This document shows positions 24,903 through 64,000 of a DNA stretch of 64,000 nt, in pieces (positions within the stretch are counted from its first letter, which is position 1; every line of letters begins with the position of its first letter). The notes beneath the pieces were generated by a model. It saw only the letters and a list, made by a program, of their open reading frames with translations. It searched no databases and was not told where the DNA came from. Source of the DNA: Lepidodermella squamata (Eukaryota > Animalia > Gastrotricha). The translations under genes were made by a program, and so were the position numbers. Location: positions 3,472,001 to 3,536,000 of the forward strand of contig JBLDXI010000007.1 of assembly GCA_047495785.1 (NCBI GenBank), written 5' to 3'.

Positions 24903-26558
24903 TCACAGATCGTCGCTCGCATTGCAATCGTGTCGTGGTATGCCATCAGGGCAGTCGCAAAGCATGCTTAAACAACGTTTGACGCCATTACAGTCGCATA
25001 TTTCTACGAAGCACGGAATGAAAACATCTTACCTAAATTACGGTATGGTAACTAACGTTGTAGGCAGTCAGGACCGGTTTTCCACTTATCAAAACACGAG
25101 CATGTATTGCCACCAGTGCACCATCCATTCTGTGGACAGGTTACGTTTCCGCAAATTTCTGAGACGGGAAAAAGTCAGGAGACTACTGAATCATCAGGAA
25201 AACCAACGATTATTGCATGCTGCGCCGGTCCAGCCGGGCTTGCAAGCGCATCTGTTTCCCCTGATGCAGAAACCATTGTTGCAGGGGGAGGTGCACTTCG
25301 CTGTGAAAAATTCAACGAATACGGTTTCCCTTAAACTGCACTATTCTTACCGAGATTGTAAGTTTTGATATCATAAATGTAGAGCCTTTTCTCGTGCTCA
25401 GAGTGGAAAGCCAAAACTGGTGGAAGAGCCCTAGTGTCATTAATCGGGAGGTACTCCTTGAACATGAGTCCGTTCGCAATAGTTTGGCACGAATCAAAGT
25501 CGCAGTATTCGACCCAAATTTGACTGCCGCCTCTCACAACAACTCCCAGTTGAAATCGGTCCTCAAACATTGGCGATTTTAGTCTGAACCGGAATTCGTT
25601 ATCAGGTGCCGTAGCAGTGAGGGCTTTTGCTACATTCGAAATTCTCAAGTACAGATCGGAGTCGGTTTCGTTCACAGTGACGTATTTGACCTGTAACCCA
25701 GCGAAGAAATTACTTTCGTTATGACCACCCGGGTAGGCTAATGTCCATCGATTCGATGAGTTCGTTATAGGGCCGAAGAAAAACACCCCACCAACATCAC
25801 GAGAGATGAAAAACGTTACGTTTATCGAGAGGTCTGTGAGCTGCATCGCCTTGATATGAGACATTTATATGCGACCGAGAAATTGAGGTTGTAAATTCTC
25901 ACGGTTGGACTGATAACATAAGCCCTATTCCAAGTCGAAGAGTCATTATGCGCCATTCGGAGAATGTAGTCTGAGTAGAACAATCTGCTATCCCCACCGA
26001 ATCGCAAGTAACGCCAATATTTTTCTAAAACAGCAGTTATCAACAATTAGCCAATTACTGGAGAAATAAACTTACGACTCCTTCCATCTGCGATCCAGCT
26101 GAATTCAGGTTCATAGTTGAGCGGATTCATCGGCGGGTTGCCAATCACTGAAATCAAAATTATTTGTCGATTTTTTTTCCTTTGGGTTAGAGGATTTATA
26201 TGCCTTCAGAGCAATCTGAGCCGGTGAATCGTGCCAAACAGGTGCAAATTCCAGGGCCGGTGCATAAACCCCCGGCCATAGAGCATTGGTCACAGATTGC
26301 TGGATTCAAAAGCTATAAGCCTCGTGGGAAATAGATATGTAAAAACTGCATTACGAGTCGCACATGTGGATCCAGTCCACCCACCGAGGCATTGGCATTT
26401 ATTTGTGGCGATGCAACTGCCTCCATTGATGCAAGGACTGCTGCAAGCTAAATTCAGAATAACGACGCAATCATCATATATGCTATAGATATTAACATAC
26501 TTTGACCTCGGATCAGCCTCGTATGAACAATCAACAAAACTGCTATCGCTTTGAGCAT
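24903..26558 (-). CDS. Secreted EGF-repeat protein with a central beta-sandwich (ConA/lectin-like) domain; paralog 1
   Basis: Signal exon MLKAIAVLLIVHTRLIRGQ; EGF exons CSSPCINGGSC...CQCLGGWTGSTC and CDQCSMAGGLC; ~200-aa all-beta-looking domain; further EGF and Cys exons to TGA at 24903. Intron 3 is GC-AG. Confidence 0.8.
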
Positions 26559-26640
26559 TTTGTCTTCCAATGTAAATTTCAAACTTATCTATGAATTCAT
26601 ATTCAGTTCACTGTCGAATCCGGCAAAATCTCTCGACTAA

Positions 26641-30688: not shown

Positions 30689-32338
30689 TCACAGTTCGTC
30701 GTTCGCATTGCAGTCATGGCGCACGGTACCGTCCGGGCAGTCACACAGCATGCTTAGACAACGTTTCGCTCCATTGCAGTCACATATTGCTGCAAATTAA
30801 CAAATAAAACCAAATAGCATATTGTAAAAATGATAGCTAACGTTGTAGGCAGTCGGGCCCGGTTTTCCATTTATCAAAACACGAACAGCTATTTTCAGCT
30901 GAACACCAGCCATTTCGTGGACAGGTTACGTTTCCGCAAATCTCTGCAATTAGAACATTTTATATATTTGCTGAGTCACTAACAATTATCGAACGGTTGT
31001 TGCATGCTGCGCCGGTCCAGCCGGGCTTGCAAACGCATTTGTTATCTCTGATGCAGTAGCCATTGTTGCAGGGGTGGTAACATTTAGCTAAGGCAACGTT
31101 CGCTGAACTATGACTTTCTACCAGTTCAACATTCTTACCTAAATTGTACGTTTTGATATCATAAATGTAGAGATTTTTGTCATGCTCAGAGTGGAAAGCC
31201 AAAACTGGTGGAAGAGCTCTGGAGTCGTTAATTGGCAGATACTCCTTGAACATTAGTCCATTCGCAAGAGTTTGACACGAATCAAAGTCGCAGTATTCGA
31301 CCCAGATTTGACTGCCGCCTCTCACAACAACTCCTAGGTGAAATCGGTCCTCGAACATAGGCGATTTTGGTCTGATCCGGAATTCGTTATTAGGTGCTGT
31401 TGCACTGATGGCCTTGGCAACATTAGCAATTCTCAAATATAAATCAGAGTCTGTTTCGTTCAACGTAACGTATTTGACCTGTAACCCAGCGAAGAAACTA
31501 CTTTCGTTATGACCGCCTGGGTAGGCTAATGTCCATCGATTTGATGAGTTCGTTAGTGGGCCGAAGAAAAACGTCCCGCCAACATGGCGAGTGATGAAAA
31601 AAGTCACGTTGATCGAAAAATCTGTGAGCTGCATCGCCTGAAAAAGAGACAACTCCAATTCAAAGCATTATGAATTGGGAATATATTACATTTGTGCTGA
31701 TAATATAAGCCCGGTACCAGGACGAGGAATCATCATGAGCCATTCGAAGAATGTAGTCTGTGTAGAACATTCTACCATCGCCACCGAATCGAGCGTAACA
31801 CCAATACTTCTCTAAAACAGCAGCTATCAACGATCAGCCGATGAATGGACACCAAAACCTACGACTCCTTCCATCTGCGATCCAGCTGAATTCAGGTTCA
31901 TACTTGAGCGGATTCATTGGCGGGTTGCCAATCACTGAAATAAACTATTATCAGTTTATTTACTCATGGGCGAAGGAATTATATGCCTTCGGAACAATCG
32001 GAGCCGGTGAATCTTGCCAAACATGTGCATATTCCAGGGCTGGTGCATAGACCTCCGGCCATGGAGCATTTGTCACAGATTGCTAGAGATTCGAGAGCTA
32101 AAGATCTCGTGGGAATAGAGGAATCGAATATGCATTACGAGTCGCGCATGTAGATCCAGTCCAGCCGCCAATGCATTGGCATTTATTTGTGGCGATACAG
32201 GTGCCTCCATTGATGCAAGGACTGCTGCAAGCTAAATGTAAGAAATGCAAATCTTTTGGAAGCAACATAGTCAAACATACTTTGCCCTCGTACAAGCCCT
32301 GCGTTAATAAGAGAAAAAAGAGTTATTGCCGCGAACAT
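30689..32338 (-). CDS. Secreted EGF + lectin-like domain protein; paralog 2
   Basis: Same exon structure as paralog 1 and clearly similar DNA; signal exon MFAAITLFSLINAGLVRGQ; GC-AG intron at 31935-31986. Confidence 0.8.
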
Positions 32339-32808
32339 GTCATCGAAAAGTAATTTTAACTGCGGATTTGCCTAAACCTATTTGAGTGTATAGCAGAATT
32401 TCTAAGAATATTCCAATGCTGCCGTAAGAAGTATAGCAGCCTTGGTCACATGGCATTCCGTCCAAAAACACGTCACCAAAATCAATTTATCTTCTGGCAA
32501 CAGCCCCGCACAAACTGTCGCTTGAATTTGCACGAGGTGTGATGATCGATAAACTCTAAATTCGGTGCACCAAAAACAAAAAATCATTTGATAACGGACG
32601 TTCACATTCGCATATTTACATGTTCGCATATTGACATATTTATGGTCCCAGGGTGCTTCATTTCATCATCTTGCTCAATTTTACACTAATGGTAACATGT
32701 CTACCTGGCGATAAAACGAACAAGCAGCTACATTTAGGCCGTGTTTTATTAAAAAAACTCTTGTTTCGGTTATAGGGGTTTCGTCATGGTGTAGAATAGA
32801 TAGATTCA

Positions 32809-33614
32809 TTATTTTGTAACGTAAATATAGCGACAGTAAAGATTGCTCTCGTGGTCGGAATGAACACATTGAAGTGGCGGCAAGGCTCTTGTGTCATTTA
32901 TCGGCAGATATTCCTCAAACATGAAGCCATTCACTAGATTGCGGCACGAGTTCAAATCGCAGTAATCGACCCAGATTTGATTGCCGGCTCTGACAACTAT
33001 GCCGAGTTGAAATCGCCCTTCGAACATTGGCGATTTGATGTTTACTCTCACCTCGTTATTCGGCGCCGTAGCGCTTAGCGGCTTCGCAACGCTAGCGAGT
33101 CGCACTATTAATTGAGCGTCAGTTTCGTTTATAGAAGCATATTTCACTTGCAATCCAGCGAAGAAAGCTCAATGGGTTCATTGGCGGGTTTCCAATTACT
33201 TTAGAAAATTTCGGAAATTTATCTTATAGCATCAAAATTGATCTTGCCTTGAGAACAATCTGATCCGTTAAACCTCGCTAAACAGCTGCAAACGCCTGGA
33301 CTGGAGCAAAAGCCTCCCGCTAATGAGCATTTGTCGCACATCGCTGTAATTGTGAATGTTACCAATTTTGAGAGAACAATGCAAGGTTGAAATACGAGTC
33401 GCGCAGGTCGCTCCAGTCCAACCGCCGATGCATTGGCATGTGTTTGCAGCAACACAGGTGCCACCATTCTGACAGGCACTACTGCAAGCTTTAATCCGAG
33501 TTTTAGAAGAAATAGTTCCGGTGTATATAACGGTAACTTACTTTGACTTTGAACGCATCCTGTGCCCAAAAGAAGCAGTAGAACGGTAACCAGCAGATTG
33601 GGTTTTTCTAACAT
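32809..33614 (-). pseudogene. EGF + lectin-like protein paralog 3 with an internal deletion and frameshift
   Basis: Signal and two EGF exons are intact. Exon 4 (IGNPPMNPLS) is joined out of frame near 33166 directly to FFAGLQVKY in the middle of the lectin-like domain; about 0.4 kb present in paralogs 1 and 2 is missing. Confidence 0.75.
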
Positions 33615-34277
33615 TTATTATCTAACGATGTAGGGAAGTTGTCCCTATCAGCCGAATCGAAACACCAAATAATTATCTTGTAATCTGCTTCGCAGTTATT
33701 ATTGCGGCTGCGAAATCATCGATCGTTGTCAACGTAAACAACTGCTTGTCATGTGATATTTTGGCGGGTGTGAAAAATCGGTTTCATATCGATAAAGACA
33801 AGGCGTAGCTTCGCGGCAACAATATTGGCTGAAAGACAGCTTGCTTGCAAAATCGCCGGTTGGATTTTGCGTTGAATATTATGCTCAACTAATGTATGGA
33901 TTTGACTCAAAGATTGTGCAGGGTATGTTAGTTTGAAGCTACAATATGATGTATGATGAGAAAAAACGCGTGTGAAATTCTGTTTCACCAGTTTCGCTTC
34001 TGGTTTAGGATATATTTTTAGTTTCCCCTGAGCTCAACTCGTAAATTGACCGTAAATTGGGCAGTTGGAAAGCTGGTATTTTCTCATTTCGTGGAGTGAT
34101 GGCCCCCGGGATCCGGCCTAATTATCGTTCTTAGCTGTGGTGGCTGTCGTTTATTCGTCGAATTTCACAGCATTTTGGCGGTAATCGTTATTGAAAAATA
34201 ATCCAAGGTGGGCATTACTCGAAAAACTCTAACGATTTATTTTCTCTTGAGTGAGACATTATTACGTAAAATGTATG

Positions 34278-42849: not shown

Positions 42850-43068
42850 GCCTTCAATTTTTGAAGCATTGATTATATTAGACATGATCAAACTGGCCAG
42901 AAATAAACGCCGCTTTTCAAGTTTTTTCGCTCAACACTGTCTCACGTTGATCATTTGTAGGTAGCGGGGAAGGCTCAACATTTATTTGATCGGATGGATT
43001 TTTAGCCTATTTTGAAAATGTTAAAATTAAAATTAAAATTTACAAAGGCAACCGAAGGTAAGTAGCTA

Positions 43069-46000
43069 CTAACGATTATCGCAGTTGACTCCAGTCCAGC
43101 CAGGTTTGCAGGCACATTTGTAACCTGAGTGGCAGAAGCCATTTTTACAGGGAGTTGTGCATTTCGCTGAAAATAGGAAGCAAACTTTGAAGAACACGAA
43201 AAACTTCACAGAATAATACCCGTTCCCCGTAAATGTAAAAAAGTAGTATAATTGCTAACCTAAATTGTAAATTTTGATGTCACGGATGTCCAATTTGTTG
43301 CCGTATGTTGAATGGAAAGAAAAAACAGCGGGCGCAACTGTCGGGTCGTTTATAGGCAGCGAAATTAGAAACATGAAACCATCGATCAAATTGATGCACG
43401 AATTCGTGTCGCAATAGTCTACCCAGACCTGATTGCCATATTTAAAAACTACGCCGAGGTGGAAAACCCCTTCAAACATCGGAGATGGCAGCCTTCTTTT
43501 GACAGCATTATTCCCATAACCTCCTGCGTTTCTCGCCACTGAAGCAGTTTGAACGAGTATTTCCGAATCAGTTGTGTTCATCACCGTATATTTGAAGTAC
43601 ATTCCAGCGAAACACAGCGTTATGTTGTTGGTTCCGGGAGGGTTGACCGTTGTGAACATATTTGATGAATTCGTAGTTGGTCCGAAGTAGAAAGACCCTC
43701 CAGTTGTCCTAACCACTTCAAGCGTTATGTTCATTGAAAAATCGGTCAACGGCATAGCCTAAAATTGTGCTCTGGGGTAGAAGAAAATGATAGGATTTCT
43801 GAAGAGCTTACGGCTCGACTGACCAAGTAACCTCGGGTCCATCCCGCAGTATTCCCCAAACGTATGACATAATTAGTCATCACAGAATTCCCGTCACCAC
43901 CAAGTCGTTCGGTGACCCAGTCGCTCACTAAAAATGCAAATCGATGACGAACTTGGAAAGTAATAGGCTTTAAACTTACGACGCTTGCCGTCAGCTGTGT
44001 AACTCAAAGTGGGGACGAAAGAATTTTGGTCGAACTTAGGATTCTTATTTATTTATTTATTTATTTAAAGAGCCATAACGCCCAGAAGAGGACAGCTCAG
44101 ACAAGTGATCAATAGAAAAGTAAAGTCAACAACAAAATTGAAAATCGAAATAGCATAAATAGTAGACTGATCGGGATCACTATCGAAATCAATGCAATGA
44201 TCAACATAACATGAAAAATATGAAAATATATGAATATTCAACAATCAGAGCAGAGCGGCATTAATGTTGTAGTAGTGTAGATAAGCCGCTTGGCGACACG
44301 CCTTCGCTGACTCCGCTTCGTGAACGCTCGAAGGCATTTGATTCCACAAGTGCGGGCCACGGTACGACATGCTTAGTTGGCCTCGCTCGGATGTGTAGGT
44401 CGGTTTTAACATGGGTTCGAAATTACGGCAGCTGTAGCCGTGGCTGCGATCGTTCAACTTAAACATCAACGTGAATTCATCCGGCGCCATCTTGTTCAGG
44501 CTCTTCCACATGAATGTACATAGGTGCATCGCATGTTTCTGGCCGACTGTTAGCCACCCAAGTCGATGCCGCAGCGGGGCCGGATCCGCCAATGGATGAG
44601 CGCCGTATATGATTTTGATAGCTCGATCCTGCGACGATTGCAGTTTGTCGCGAGTCGATTTTGAGGCCTGTCCGAGGGTGAGGTCGCCATAATTCAGGTG
44701 GCTGACGACGAGGCCATTTGTCATCATAACAGCAGTTTTGCGATCGATTCCAGCGTTGACAGCTTGTTTGAGAGCAAAAAGGCCTTTTCGGGCTTTGCCT
44801 TTGGCCATCTCGACGTGCTCATCGAATTGTAGCTTGTTGTCAATTTTGAAACCAAGGGTATCCATGATTTCTGACGGCTTTATCGCAACTCCTCCGATTG
44901 TGACCTTGAAATCGGGCGCTGTCGAGAGGTGTGGTTTGAGAAGCATGAATTGCGATTTTTTCCCATTTACTGCGAGGCTGTTCTGTTTTAGCCATGCGCA
45001 TACCCTGTCAAGTTCCAGTTGCAGAACTGAGTGGAGTTCGTTGATGTTCTTCGATCCGTAAAAAATTGTAATGTCGTCGGCGTATTGTGCTATACCGCAT
45101 CTCCTTAAAATCAAAGGCAGGTCGTTTACATAAATTGTAAACATGAGTGGCCCAAGAACCGATCCTTGTGGCACACCGCAATCAATTGACTCGAACGGGG
45201 ATGCTTCGCCGTTGATTTTCGTGGTTTGGCGGCGATTGCTCAAGTAGTTTATCAATAGGCGAATTGACTTTTCCGTTACACCAGCGGATCGGAGAGATTC
45301 GATAATCCCATCGTGGTGGAGCGTGTCGAAGGCTTTGGATAAGTCGATCGACACGGCTCCAACCACGTTTCCTTTGTCAAGTAGATGTCGCCAGCGTTCG
45401 GTGAACGATGCCACGCAGGTGTCAGTCGAATGGTATTGACGAAATCCGTGTTGTGCCGGTGTTAAGAATTTGATCGCTCGCAAATGATCTTTCAGCTGTG
45501 TTGCCAGGCAACGCTCGAACGTACGAGATAGTGGTGAAGTGATCGAAATCGGCCTAAAATTCCCAACCTCAGCCTTTGATCCGGACTTATGCAGCGGTGT
45601 GACAATAGCCGTTTTCCAATCACTGATAAAGACACCATCTCGAATGGCCAAGTTGAAGAGCGCTGTGAGATGCCGAGCAATTGAAGGCTTTGCCATCTTC
45701 ACGATGCACTCGGGGATGCCGTCGAACCCGGTCGTAGCCTTGTAACTCAGTTTGTCGATCGCTTTTTCGACATCGGTGACCGAGACAGGTCGAAACGTAA
45801 ACGGCGTTGAGCTTCGTTTACGTCTTGCGAAGTTCAGACAGCCTGCGAGACTTTCGGCCACGATTTTTCCTGCTTGTGAGAAGAACAGATTAAAATTGGT
45901 GGCCTTTTGCAATGACTCATCTCTTGATAGCTGCGTCCAGACGTTGCGGTTCTTTGGCTTGGGACGGAAATCTTTGACGATTCGCCACAATTTTCGCGGG

Positions 46001-46705
46001 TCGTTGCCAGCCTCCTTAACTCGTCGACGATATCCAGCACGGCGCGCCTTGCGTCGTTGTCGTTGACGTTGTCGCCGCGTGAGCGTTGGATCAAAATGCT
46101 TCTTCTTGGCTTGGCGATTTCGCTTTTTAGCTTGTTCTTTGTCGATCAACGGGGCCACTTCGTCCATCACTGCTAGAAGCCGGAGTTTGATTTGAGACCA
46201 GAAAGTTACGCAATCGTCCGACTCGTTGACCGTCGCAAGTTTCTCCTGTAGTAGTTGATTGAGTCGTTCAGTATCAACACTGTTCTGCACTGTATAATTA
46301 TTTCGAACAGTAAATGATTGAAGGTCGTACTTTAACGCCTTACCAATCGAGCAATCATCACCTTTGAAGCGAGCTAAACAAGTACAAGCATTCGGTGCCG
46401 AGCAATAACCACCTGCTAGCGAACACTTGCTGCATAGAGCTGAATGGTCAATAGGGGAACATAAAATAATTCATCCCGGCTCGAAACAATGATAATTACG
46501 AGTGGAACAAGTGCTGCCAGACCATCCGCTAATGCACTGGCATATGTTTGTCGAAATGCACGAGCCTCCATTTTGGCATTGGCTACTGCAAGCTATTAGA
46601 AATCGGGCAAATAATGGGCAAAATCCTGAAGCTTGGAATTTTCATACTTTGCGCATATCCCATAGCGAGCAAAGAATAATAGGTTAAAATCTTGTAAGAA
46701 AACAT
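43069..46705 (-). CDS. EGF + lectin-like protein paralog 4, interrupted in exon 4 by a LINE
   Basis: Exon 1 46705-46648 (MFSYKILTYYSLLAMGYAQ); EGF exons 46592-46500 and 46439-46344; exon 4 starts at 46289 and resumes at 44041 (VQNPKFDQNSFVPTLSYTADGKR, homologous to VIGNPPMNPLNYEPEFSWIADGRS); lectin-like domain at 43755-43260; EGF exon ~43167-43075. The 3' end is approximate. Confidence 0.8.
44046..46282 (-). mobile_element. 5'-truncated non-LTR retrotransposon (CR1/L2/Jockey-group-like) with intact RT ORF
   Basis: RT motifs PLHKSG...NFRPISI, QHGFR, IDLSKAFD, GVPQGSVLGP, QYADD; stop at 44245; ~200-bp 3' UTR ending in (TAAA)n at 44046-44066; flanked by TTCT at 44042-44045 and 46283-46286; no endonuclease domain. 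Confidence 0.93.
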
Positions 46706-47240
46706 TTTTTGTATTGTTTTTGGACAATGCGGAACATGCAGCTTGCGTAAAAATTGGGATTGCAGGTGAAAAGGCTGCCTATCAATCTCCCACGCAGTTG
46801 CATTACAGATTACAGATCGATGAGCATCGCGCTGGCTGCAGCGGCCAACGTCCGGGCACATGCAACGAACGATTTAAATTACTGATCAATTTTAAAACTG
46901 ATTTAAATCTTAGTAGATTTTCCTCTCATTTTTTGGCATTACGTTTCGACAAACCTTCCTCCTAGATACTAGAATTATTCAGATCGTTTCCGTCTTTTAT
47001 GATTTAGTTATATCAACGGCTGGGTATCTACTGAGTACTAAGGTGTTAGGAAGGACTAATTGCCGGCTGGAATTTTCCTTTGAAAGTTGAAACAGCTCAT
47101 ACAGAATAAGAGAAATCGATGTAATGAGAATTTAAATCGGTTCCCTTTGACGAATTTGATTGGGAAGGTTGATGGAAAGTAAACAGTGGAGGATATCCGC
47201 GCGCCAAACATTCGCCTGGGTAGATACGCTAAAAGCTAAA

Positions 47241-48479
47241 ATGCCTCTCAACTGCGCTATTTTCTTGAAATTGACACTTTGCCTGATGATCCAGTTCTCG
47301 AAATCGCAACCTCCACCTGATCAAGGGCCTCGAATGGGCGGGGCAGGTTTCTCGAACATCTACTCCGATTTGCCGGGGTTGACTTTGCCTATAAGTGAGC
47401 CCATCCCAACCATGACTACGGATGATTTGATAGTGTGCCACAACGTCCGCACACACCTTCGAAACCCTTTGGATAACGTAGATAAACCCATTGAAGTCCA
47501 TATGACCTTCGCTATTACTGGCGACGTTTTCGAACTTGACCCAATAGCTGAAGACCTCCGGTTCTCAGCAATCATCGGATTTCAATGGACAATCGATACT
47601 TGTCCCTCAAGTATCTTAACTGGAAATCGCCCCGAACGAGTTGTGATTGATTCGGTCGATGACGTCTGGCATCCTCGAGTCATGATGTCAACGAATCCTG
47701 GTGACATTCTATTGCAAGATTCCGATATTGGCCACTATTTGGAGGCTGCTTACATACCTACGACGCCTTATCGAAACATAACTTTCTACTGGACACGAAT
47801 GGGAATGTTCAATTCGAAATGTGAACTCACCCTCAGGAAGTTCCCATTTGACATACAAAAATGCCGTATCAAATTCAAAATCATTGAACCGGATAGTTTT
47901 TTGAAATTCGGCATATTGAGCTTTCCACCTCTTAGATTGTCTTCGAATGGCGAGTGGAGGGTTGAGGATTACACGACGGCTGTGACTAAATTGGATTCGA
48001 TAACGATAAGTGGGGCGAATGTGAGTGTAGCTGAGTTCTGCCTTGTAATCAGACGAGTCCCAGATTACATGCTGTTCTACTTCCTCGTGCCTTGTCAAAT
48101 GCTGGTTTTACTCGAACTGGCGTCATTTCTAGCTCCTCCAGAGCGACTGGATAGAACTCTTCTTTCCATCACAATTCTTCTAGCTCTATTGTTTTCGCAA
48201 TCTGACGTTCTGAGAAATGTACCCGAGTCGTCTCAGCGAGTAATGATGGCTGATTATTTCCTTCTTCTGGTTGCTTTCACCGGCCTCTGTGCGTTCTACG
48301 ATGCTTTGATGAACTACTTTTGCGCCACAATTCCTAAGAAAATGGAGTCGACGATGCCAGGCTGCCCGGGTTGCTTCGGAAAAATTCGTACTTCTCGATG
48401 TGTTGACATTTTCTTCGCAATAATTGCAATCCTGATTTTGTTTGTAATCAATTTTTATTCCTTCAGTGTTGCAGCTTAA
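47241..48479 (+). CDS. Divergent Cys-loop ligand-gated ion channel subunit 1, intronless
   Basis: Signal peptide; loop A WHPRV; Cys-loop CELTLRKFPFDIQKC; NGEW; pre-M1 IRR; four TM helices (M2 DRTLLSITILLALLFSQ); very short M3-M4 loop. Confidence 0.92.
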   Translation: MPLNCAIFLKLTLCLMIQFSKSQPPPDQGPRMGGAGFSNIYSDLPGLTLPISEPIPTMTTDDLIVCHNVRTHLRNPLDNVDKPIEVHMTFAITGDVFELDPIAEDLRFSAIIGFQWTIDTCPSSILTGNRPERVVIDSVDDVWHPRVMMSTNPGDILLQDSDIGHYLEAAYIPTTPYRNITFYWTRMGMFNSKCELTLRKFPFDIQKCRIKFKIIEPDSFLKFGILSFPPLRLSSNGEWRVEDYTTAVTKLDSITISGANVSVAEFCLVIRRVPDYMLFYFLVPCQMLVLLELASFLAPPERLDRTLLSITILLALLFSQSDVLRNVPESSQRVMMADYFLLLVAFTGLCAFYDALMNYFCATIPKKMESTMPGCPGCFGKIRTSRCVDIFFAIIAILILFVINFYSFSVAA

Positions 48480-63400: not shown

Positions 63401-64000
63401 GTTATTCCCGCAAAATCCAAGCAGTCGGATTTTACAGCTACCGCCCCCAGCGATTGCGCCTACCCCAGAAACGGAGACGTCGCTGAAGCAAACAGCCGTT
63501 GGCGTTGCCCCGTTAGCCGGCAACTGTGCCACACCGGGCTGATGAGGTTGCAACAGGAGTAAGTGGCGGCTGCCCAGTTGCTGGCAGTCCAACAGCACCT
63601 ACGCCGGCGTAGGTAAAGCCATTCTGTCCAAACTGCTGCCAAACATGTAGCCCAGTAACCCCAGAAGCGTTTACTCCACCGGGACAAAAGTTGGCATCTG
63701 AATAAAAGTAAGTATACTTAGGCTTGTAAATACTTTCTGTTCAATGAATCTTCACATACATTGGCTGACCGCTGTGGATGAAAGCGTTACTCCACTCCAA
63801 TGATAGCTACCACCGGACGGGTATATCGTGTCGTAATCGATTTCCAACCGGAAATCGGTTGTGCCGCTCGGCATTGCTGTGCTGTAGCTCACCCTACCAC
63901 CCATTGTCGCAGGAGTCTGGACAAGCAGGCCGGCTGACGACTGCGAACCGCTTGGCAGGTATACAGAGCTGAAAAAGGCGCCGGCGGATGTACTGACTGT
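60448..64000 (-). pseudogene. Cys-loop channel subunit 3 with N-terminal lectin-like domain(s) and a mucin-like stalk; frameshifted; probably extends beyond the window
   Basis: Thr/Ser stalk ~63005-62495, beta-sandwich domain ~62480-61655, then LBD (WVPSM, CSLRLRKFPFDSQKC) and TM region, linked by in-frame GT-AG introns. Frameshifts at ~60856 and ~60755. A second copy of the domain at 63400-64000 is also frameshifted (~63540); its link to the channel is inferred. Confidence 0.75.

Follow-up and report, generated by a model that had tools for sequence, protein, structure and literature searches.

A recent in-frame insertion of a 5′-truncated LINE into an exon of a tandem EGF-domain gene of the gastrotrich Lepidodermella squamata

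The host genes derived from reverse transcriptases (RTs) of retroelements, telomerase and the rvt genes, are old and single-copy; they are conserved across species and stand apart from any active family. Insertions of long interspersed nuclear elements (LINEs) into exons, with inactivation of the gene, are well documented; the L1 copy in exon 14 of human F8 is an example of a 5′-truncated LINE inserted de novo into a coding exon (PMC4859970). Truncation at the 5′ end and microhomology at the 5′ junction are hallmarks of LINEs (PMC2881922). Here we describe a LINE copy lying in exon 4 of a predicted EGF-domain gene in a 64,000-nt stretch of the Lepidodermella squamata genome (assembly GCA_047495785.1, contig JBLDXI010000007.1, positions 3,472,001 to 3,536,000). 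The whole stretch is called the window, and coordinates are counted from its first nucleotide. The RT of this copy can be read in frame with the upstream exons of its host. We consider it quite probable that the locus records a recent, ordinary, gene-disrupting retrotransposition into one gene of a tandem family that encodes putatively secreted EGF-domain proteins.

Like other exon-disrupting LINE insertions, the one in the window is a 5′-truncated non-LTR (long terminal repeat) element with a 3′ tail that interrupts a protein; there is microhomology at its 5′ junction, and its family is active, with intact copies. Unlike the L1 insertion in F8, it is found in a small invertebrate with introns of ~55 nt, and the gene families and transposons of the contig are likewise of an invertebrate kind and plainly not human; the element has a single open reading frame (ORF) and a (TAAA)n tail instead of poly(A), and the insert is in sense orientation, in frame, and carries an open RT. 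With telomerase and the rvt genes the window copy shares an RT that is free of endonuclease and placed behind the promoter of a host gene; unlike those genes, it is 99% identical to mobile copies. It differs from the F8 insertion and from the host RT genes also in being known from sequence alone. The closest kind would be the exon-disrupting de novo LINE insertion, and the copy appears to fall outside the known classes of host RT genes. We know of no host gene that arose from a LINE RT in this manner.

The LINE copy occupies positions 44045..46282 on the minus strand (its ends are defined to within 2–4 nt owing to junction microhomology) and consists of a linker, the RT, a C-terminal region, a 3′ untranslated region (UTR) of ~180 nt and a tail. 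Its length is 2.24 kb (2238 nt); the first ~1.5 kb of the element, including the whole endonuclease, is missing. The copy begins immediately past the last endonuclease motif and thus has no 5′ UTR, promoter region or nuclease. The tail, (TAAA)5TAA, is at 44067–44045 of the minus strand and includes AATAAA.

ORF translation gave a stop-free frame of 681 codons (44245..46290, minus strand), with the first codon shared with host exon 4. The only Pfam match of this frame was RVT_1 (amino acids 237–482; E = 5.6e-34; 118 bits versus a cut-off of 29.6); its sequence matches in PDB were the RT cores of R2 and of human L1 ORF2p, and the YADD catalytic motif is intact in the translation. Host exons 1–3 have a total length of 247 nt and end in phase 1, while introns 1–3 are 55, 60 and 54 nt long. 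The donor GT of intron 3 is at 46343, and exon 4 begins at 46289, beyond the 54-nt intron. The remaining G joined to TG CAG AAC AGT reads on into the RT frame, and phase arithmetic with exon-by-exon translation predicts a fusion frame of 763 codons from the host ATG to TGA at 44247–44245. An initial annotation of the window had placed the element 7 nt into exon 4 on the strand of the host gene, had predicted that normal splicing from the donor at 46343 would lead into a stop-free 681-codon RT frame with YADD, giving ~763 amino acids, and had noted AATAAA in the tail; all of this was reproduced here, and we agree with its estimate that the same strand and the same frame would be hit by chance in one case out of six. 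As an in silico prediction, the fusion is real: the promoter side of the host, its ATG, a putative leader and two EGF modules stand in frame with an endonuclease-less RT.

Two bases at the 5′ junction (AA) may belong to the host or equally to the element, and one A at the 3′ junction may be part of the tail. The 4-bp TTCT duplication proposed earlier (AGAA on the minus strand) is present at both ends; however, it overlaps the element and the tail, and amounts to only 1–4 bp of real evidence. Junction inspection of other copies of the family revealed no clear target-site duplications. In flank searches of the 121-Mb assembly, each flank matched only itself, with no empty-site allele or second haplotype; nor did these searches yield a retrocopy of a spliced transcript made of exons 1–3 and the RT.

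Searches for copies of the element covered the whole assembly as well. There were ~7 long copies at 96–99% identity and ~10 short 3′ fragments, besides older copies of 75–90% identity. The 5′ ends of the copies fall at >10 different positions, the insertion sites are unrelated, and the 3′ UTR and tail are common to all, with (TAAA)3–6 in every copy examined. Copies that differ in their 5′ ends and carry (TAAA)n at unrelated loci are characteristic of target-primed reverse transcription with 5′ truncation (PMC2881922). Four copies are longer than the window copy and extend 5′ of its first base, two of them for 1508 nt to a common 5′ end; the full element should thus be ~3.75 kb long. The longer copies bear out the earlier claim that the window copy is truncated and has neither a promoter nor an endonuclease domain of its own.

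One full-length copy, L002 (G000:C11:1000508-1004249), has an intact frame of 1167 codons with an endonuclease-like region and the RT. Among the seven long young copies, three are open across the part covered; another copy, L003, is demonstrably dead, carrying a stop together with an 8-bp deletion. Judged from its copies, the family is young and active and retains an intact master-like member. Two more young copies are split by insertions of ~1.5 kb and ~1 kb: L008/L009 (G000:C9:4639917-4643695) and L006 (G000:C15:2493798-2496988).

The endonuclease region of L002 was matched to the Exo_endo_phos profile along almost its entire length (profile positions 3–225 of 225), though weakly (20.6 bits versus a cut-off of 24.5), and a PDB sequence search with this region gave no match. 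The L002 frame is collinear with a database LINE protein, P0001 (1038 amino acids; 39% identity over 935 amino acids), in which the equivalent endonuclease region passes the cut-off. From the below-cut-off profile match and the P0001 alignment, the element would belong to the single-ORF LINEs of the apurinic/apyrimidinic endonuclease (APE) type. It has the same order of parts as P0001, an ORF2-like protein of APE-type LINEs (endonuclease, linker, RT, C-terminal region); L002 departs from P0001 and other relatives in having a further ~230 open codons ahead of the endonuclease. A protein word search with the RT found the nearest database relatives at 42–49% identity, with none above 49%. The ~230 additional codons are partly hydrophobic and match no family; database relatives have PHD-like fingers at this place.

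The window copy differs from the other young copies by 11 private changes in 2238 nt (0.5%). At seven of the 11 sites all outgroup copies agree with the young group; at the remaining four (45628, 44698, 44457 and 44126) the base of the window copy is shared only by more diverged copies. The possibility that private differences are retained ancestral states was rejected, as the outgroups carry the young-group state at those seven sites; the 11 differences were most likely derived on the lineage of the window copy. The probability that 10 random substitutions produce no stop is ~0.64. Thus, an open frame is expected at such youth and is in itself uninformative.

Ten private changes are in the coding region, at window positions 46208, 45845, 45715, 45628, 45532, 45528, 45157, 44779, 44698 and 44457; three of them are non-synonymous (E28V, G149A, A255S) and seven synonymous, with pN/pS of 0.13. 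The probability of the 3:7 ratio under neutrality is 0.002, in a test that was post hoc, used 10 changes and concerned one of 7 copies examined. Selection shaped most of these changes, and the question is when it acted. A comparison of subfamilies over 676 codons (the young group versus a copy on contig 66 with 88% identity) gave an omega of 0.138, as is seen in active LINE lineages; the divergence and dN/dS comparison suggested along with the initial annotation therefore gave 0.5% private divergence and a pN/pS equal to the value for the family. Because of this equality most of the changes probably arose in the source before insertion. The private changes of the dead copy L003 are synonymous-rich too (8 to 7), which indicates that divergence of source elements prior to insertion does occur in this LINE family. 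We infer that most private changes of the window copy probably predate the insertion and came from an active source element absent from the assembly.

The host gene, on the minus strand, has ~342 codons and encodes a leader, two EGF modules, a domain of ~230 amino acids without a known family and one more EGF module. Exon 1 (46648..46705) contains the ATG and a 19-codon hydrophobic leader, a putative signal peptide, and ends in phase 1. In profile searches, made with each exon singly, the first EGF-like module in exon 2 (46500..46592) reached 29.6 bits for EGF_2 (cut-off 22.1) and 22.6 bits for EGF (cut-off 21.5); the second one, in exon 3 (46344..46439), is clearly EGF-like (EGF_PEAR1L, E = 5.3e-6; EGF_2, E = 0.004) though under the curated cut-offs. 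Exon 4 is divided by the LINE into 7 nt (TGCAGAA, 46283..46289) upstream of the insertion and the other 62 nt (43980..44041). With the element taken out, it is an exon of 69 nt running from phase 1 to phase 1 and encoding V-Q-N-P-K-F-D-Q-...-Y-T-A-D-G-K-R; exon 4 thus restored aligns with three paralogs in the window, as expected from the earlier statement that removal of the element recovers VQNPKFDQ... with homology to paralogs. All exons 3′ of the insertion remain open: exon 5 (43812..43927), exon 6 (43260..43758; 166 codons of the uncatalogued domain), exon 7 (43074..43166; the third EGF-like module, passing the curated EGF cut-offs) and a tiny terminal exon with the stop near 43007.

That the host supplies the ATG was confirmed at exon 1. 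The signal peptide is an inferred feature, assigned on the basis of a short hydrophobic first exon that is common to the four paralogous genes; in each of them this exon ends with ...Q + A|gt, and hydrophobicity is lower in the leader of the host gene than in the paralog leaders.

The central domain of ~230 residues matched no Pfam family, and a protein word search with exon 6 found no relatives. An exhaustive search among 1.84 billion representatives produced just five marginal hits, all to bacterial CARDB-repeat proteins with 23–27% identity; the best match to CARDB beta-sandwich repeats (43261–43758, minus strand) was repeat-wise, with E = 2.7e-11 and 26% identity. Homology to CARDB was set aside, identity at this level being taken as generic beta-sandwich resemblance. 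Since there were no Pfam or word-search relatives and only these five marginal bacterial hits, the host family is lineage-restricted. A short tblastx match ties the host domain to positions 63776–63859 of the window.

The three paralogs, also on the minus strand, are at 25200–26640, 30990–32420 and 32780–33680 and have the same exon plan; two complete genes and one partial gene are thus found within 21 kb of the disrupted one. Identity between the host gene and the paralogs is 63–70% in exon 3 and 47–49% in exon 6, and the paralog exon 4 can be aligned with that of the host (V-I-G-N-P-P-M-N-P-L-...-W-I-A-D-G-R-S-R). In the third paralog (32780–33680) exon 4 hits a stop, exon 5 is absent and exon 6 lacks its first third; this gene is probably a decaying copy. 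In all three paralogs the donor of intron 3 (~26205, 31990 and 33250, minus strand) is GC rather than GT, in the context ...AAG|GCA... with no GT nearby, so that this intron is probably of the GC-AG type; the host gene has the standard GTAAGG. On the opposite strand, one uninterrupted frame of 439 codons (47160–48479, plus strand) with weak matches to Cys-loop channel ligand-binding and membrane domains starts ~450 bp from the host ATG, which leaves a short divergent intergenic region common to both genes.

A gene-disrupting retrotransposition would have proceeded as follows. An active single-ORF LINE of ~3.75 kb, from a source that is absent from the assembly, would have inserted into exon 4 very recently by target-primed reverse transcription; either reverse transcription or 5′ joining would have halted ~1.5 kb short, leaving no 5′ region and no endonuclease, and the strand and frame of the host would have been matched by chance. 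The host protein would be lost beyond residue 84. A transcript ending at the AATAAA-rich tail would encode a leader-EGF-EGF-RT chimera without a role, while a transcript that reads on would meet a premature stop far upstream of the junctions that follow. Should the leader work, the chimera would enter the secretory pathway, where an RT lacking a nuclease, a template and a primer would have no evident role; to our knowledge, no role has been described for an RT directed into this pathway. Downstream host exons that are still open are what one expects after a very recent hit, and two intact tandem paralogs nearby would provide redundancy.

The initial annotation had favored an early stage of capture of a chimeric, possibly secreted RT. 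In such incipient domestication the host promoter, ATG and leader would express an endonuclease-less RT fusion maintained by purifying selection since the insertion. The open 763-codon frame and the intact catalytic motif are compatible with this; still, the case for it comes wholly from the synonymous-biased private changes, and we give it very little credence. Several points do weigh against a mere disruption by a diverged source element. None of the private variants is shared by any other copy (all search candidates were scored and 19 fetched copies inspected), so the source lineage is a hypothetical one. The 3:7 ratio differs from that of the pooled private changes of other copies, 45:16 (Fisher p = 0.010), which together with the neutrality test puts the departure of the private branch at p ~0.002–0.01. 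Since all six private transitions are synonymous, the pattern is not accounted for by transition bias. The synonymous bias could in principle reflect purifying selection after insertion, and loss of host function is itself a prediction. On the other hand, ordinary evolution of the family yields the same ratio, the bias recurs in the dead copy, the test is post hoc and small, and the family is still active, with its master-like copy intact. Protein database searches found no chimeric or related protein, and the lack of decay in downstream host exons fits a very recent event. With a family this active, a divergence of 0.5%, a source-like pN/pS and two intact paralogs, capture received no positive support and seems highly improbable; the caveat attached to the initial annotation, that an intact ORF may only reflect a recent insertion knocking out the gene, is in our judgment the better reading.

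The insertion might also be tolerated, if the enlarged exon 4 is skipped or if the element is removed by means of cryptic splice sites, so that a slightly shortened normal protein is made. Exon 4 is symmetric (69 nt, phase 1-1), so skipping would keep the frame, every downstream exon is open, and exon skipping after retroelement insertion has been documented (PMC4859970). However, the exon 4 segment is conserved in the paralogs (...S-[YW]-x-A-D-G...) and probably contributes to the fold of the ~230-residue domain; moreover, introns of ~55 nt suggest that splice sites are recognized across the intron, a situation in which skipping is uncommon. We regard this outcome as unlikely. An artefact of assembly, or an insertion that is somatic or confined to one individual and lies outside the germline of the species, would agree with the presence of a single haplotype of the locus in the assembly, yet it appears extremely improbable: the junctions are precise and typical for retrotransposition, one end being marked by the tail and the opposite end by microhomology, with an exact host exon upon removal, and the 11 private changes show that the copy is not a mis-joined read of another one.

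The synonymous-biased private changes make domestication directly testable, yet they are fully explained by ordinary evolution of the source lineage. If the chimera were expressed, fixed and constrained, a LINE RT would have been caught at the first step toward a host protein, possibly a secreted one. The locus also documents a LINE family that is young, low in copy number and still in possession of an intact master-like member, and in the compact genome of an invertebrate it would provide a clean textbook case of a gene disrupted by an active LINE.

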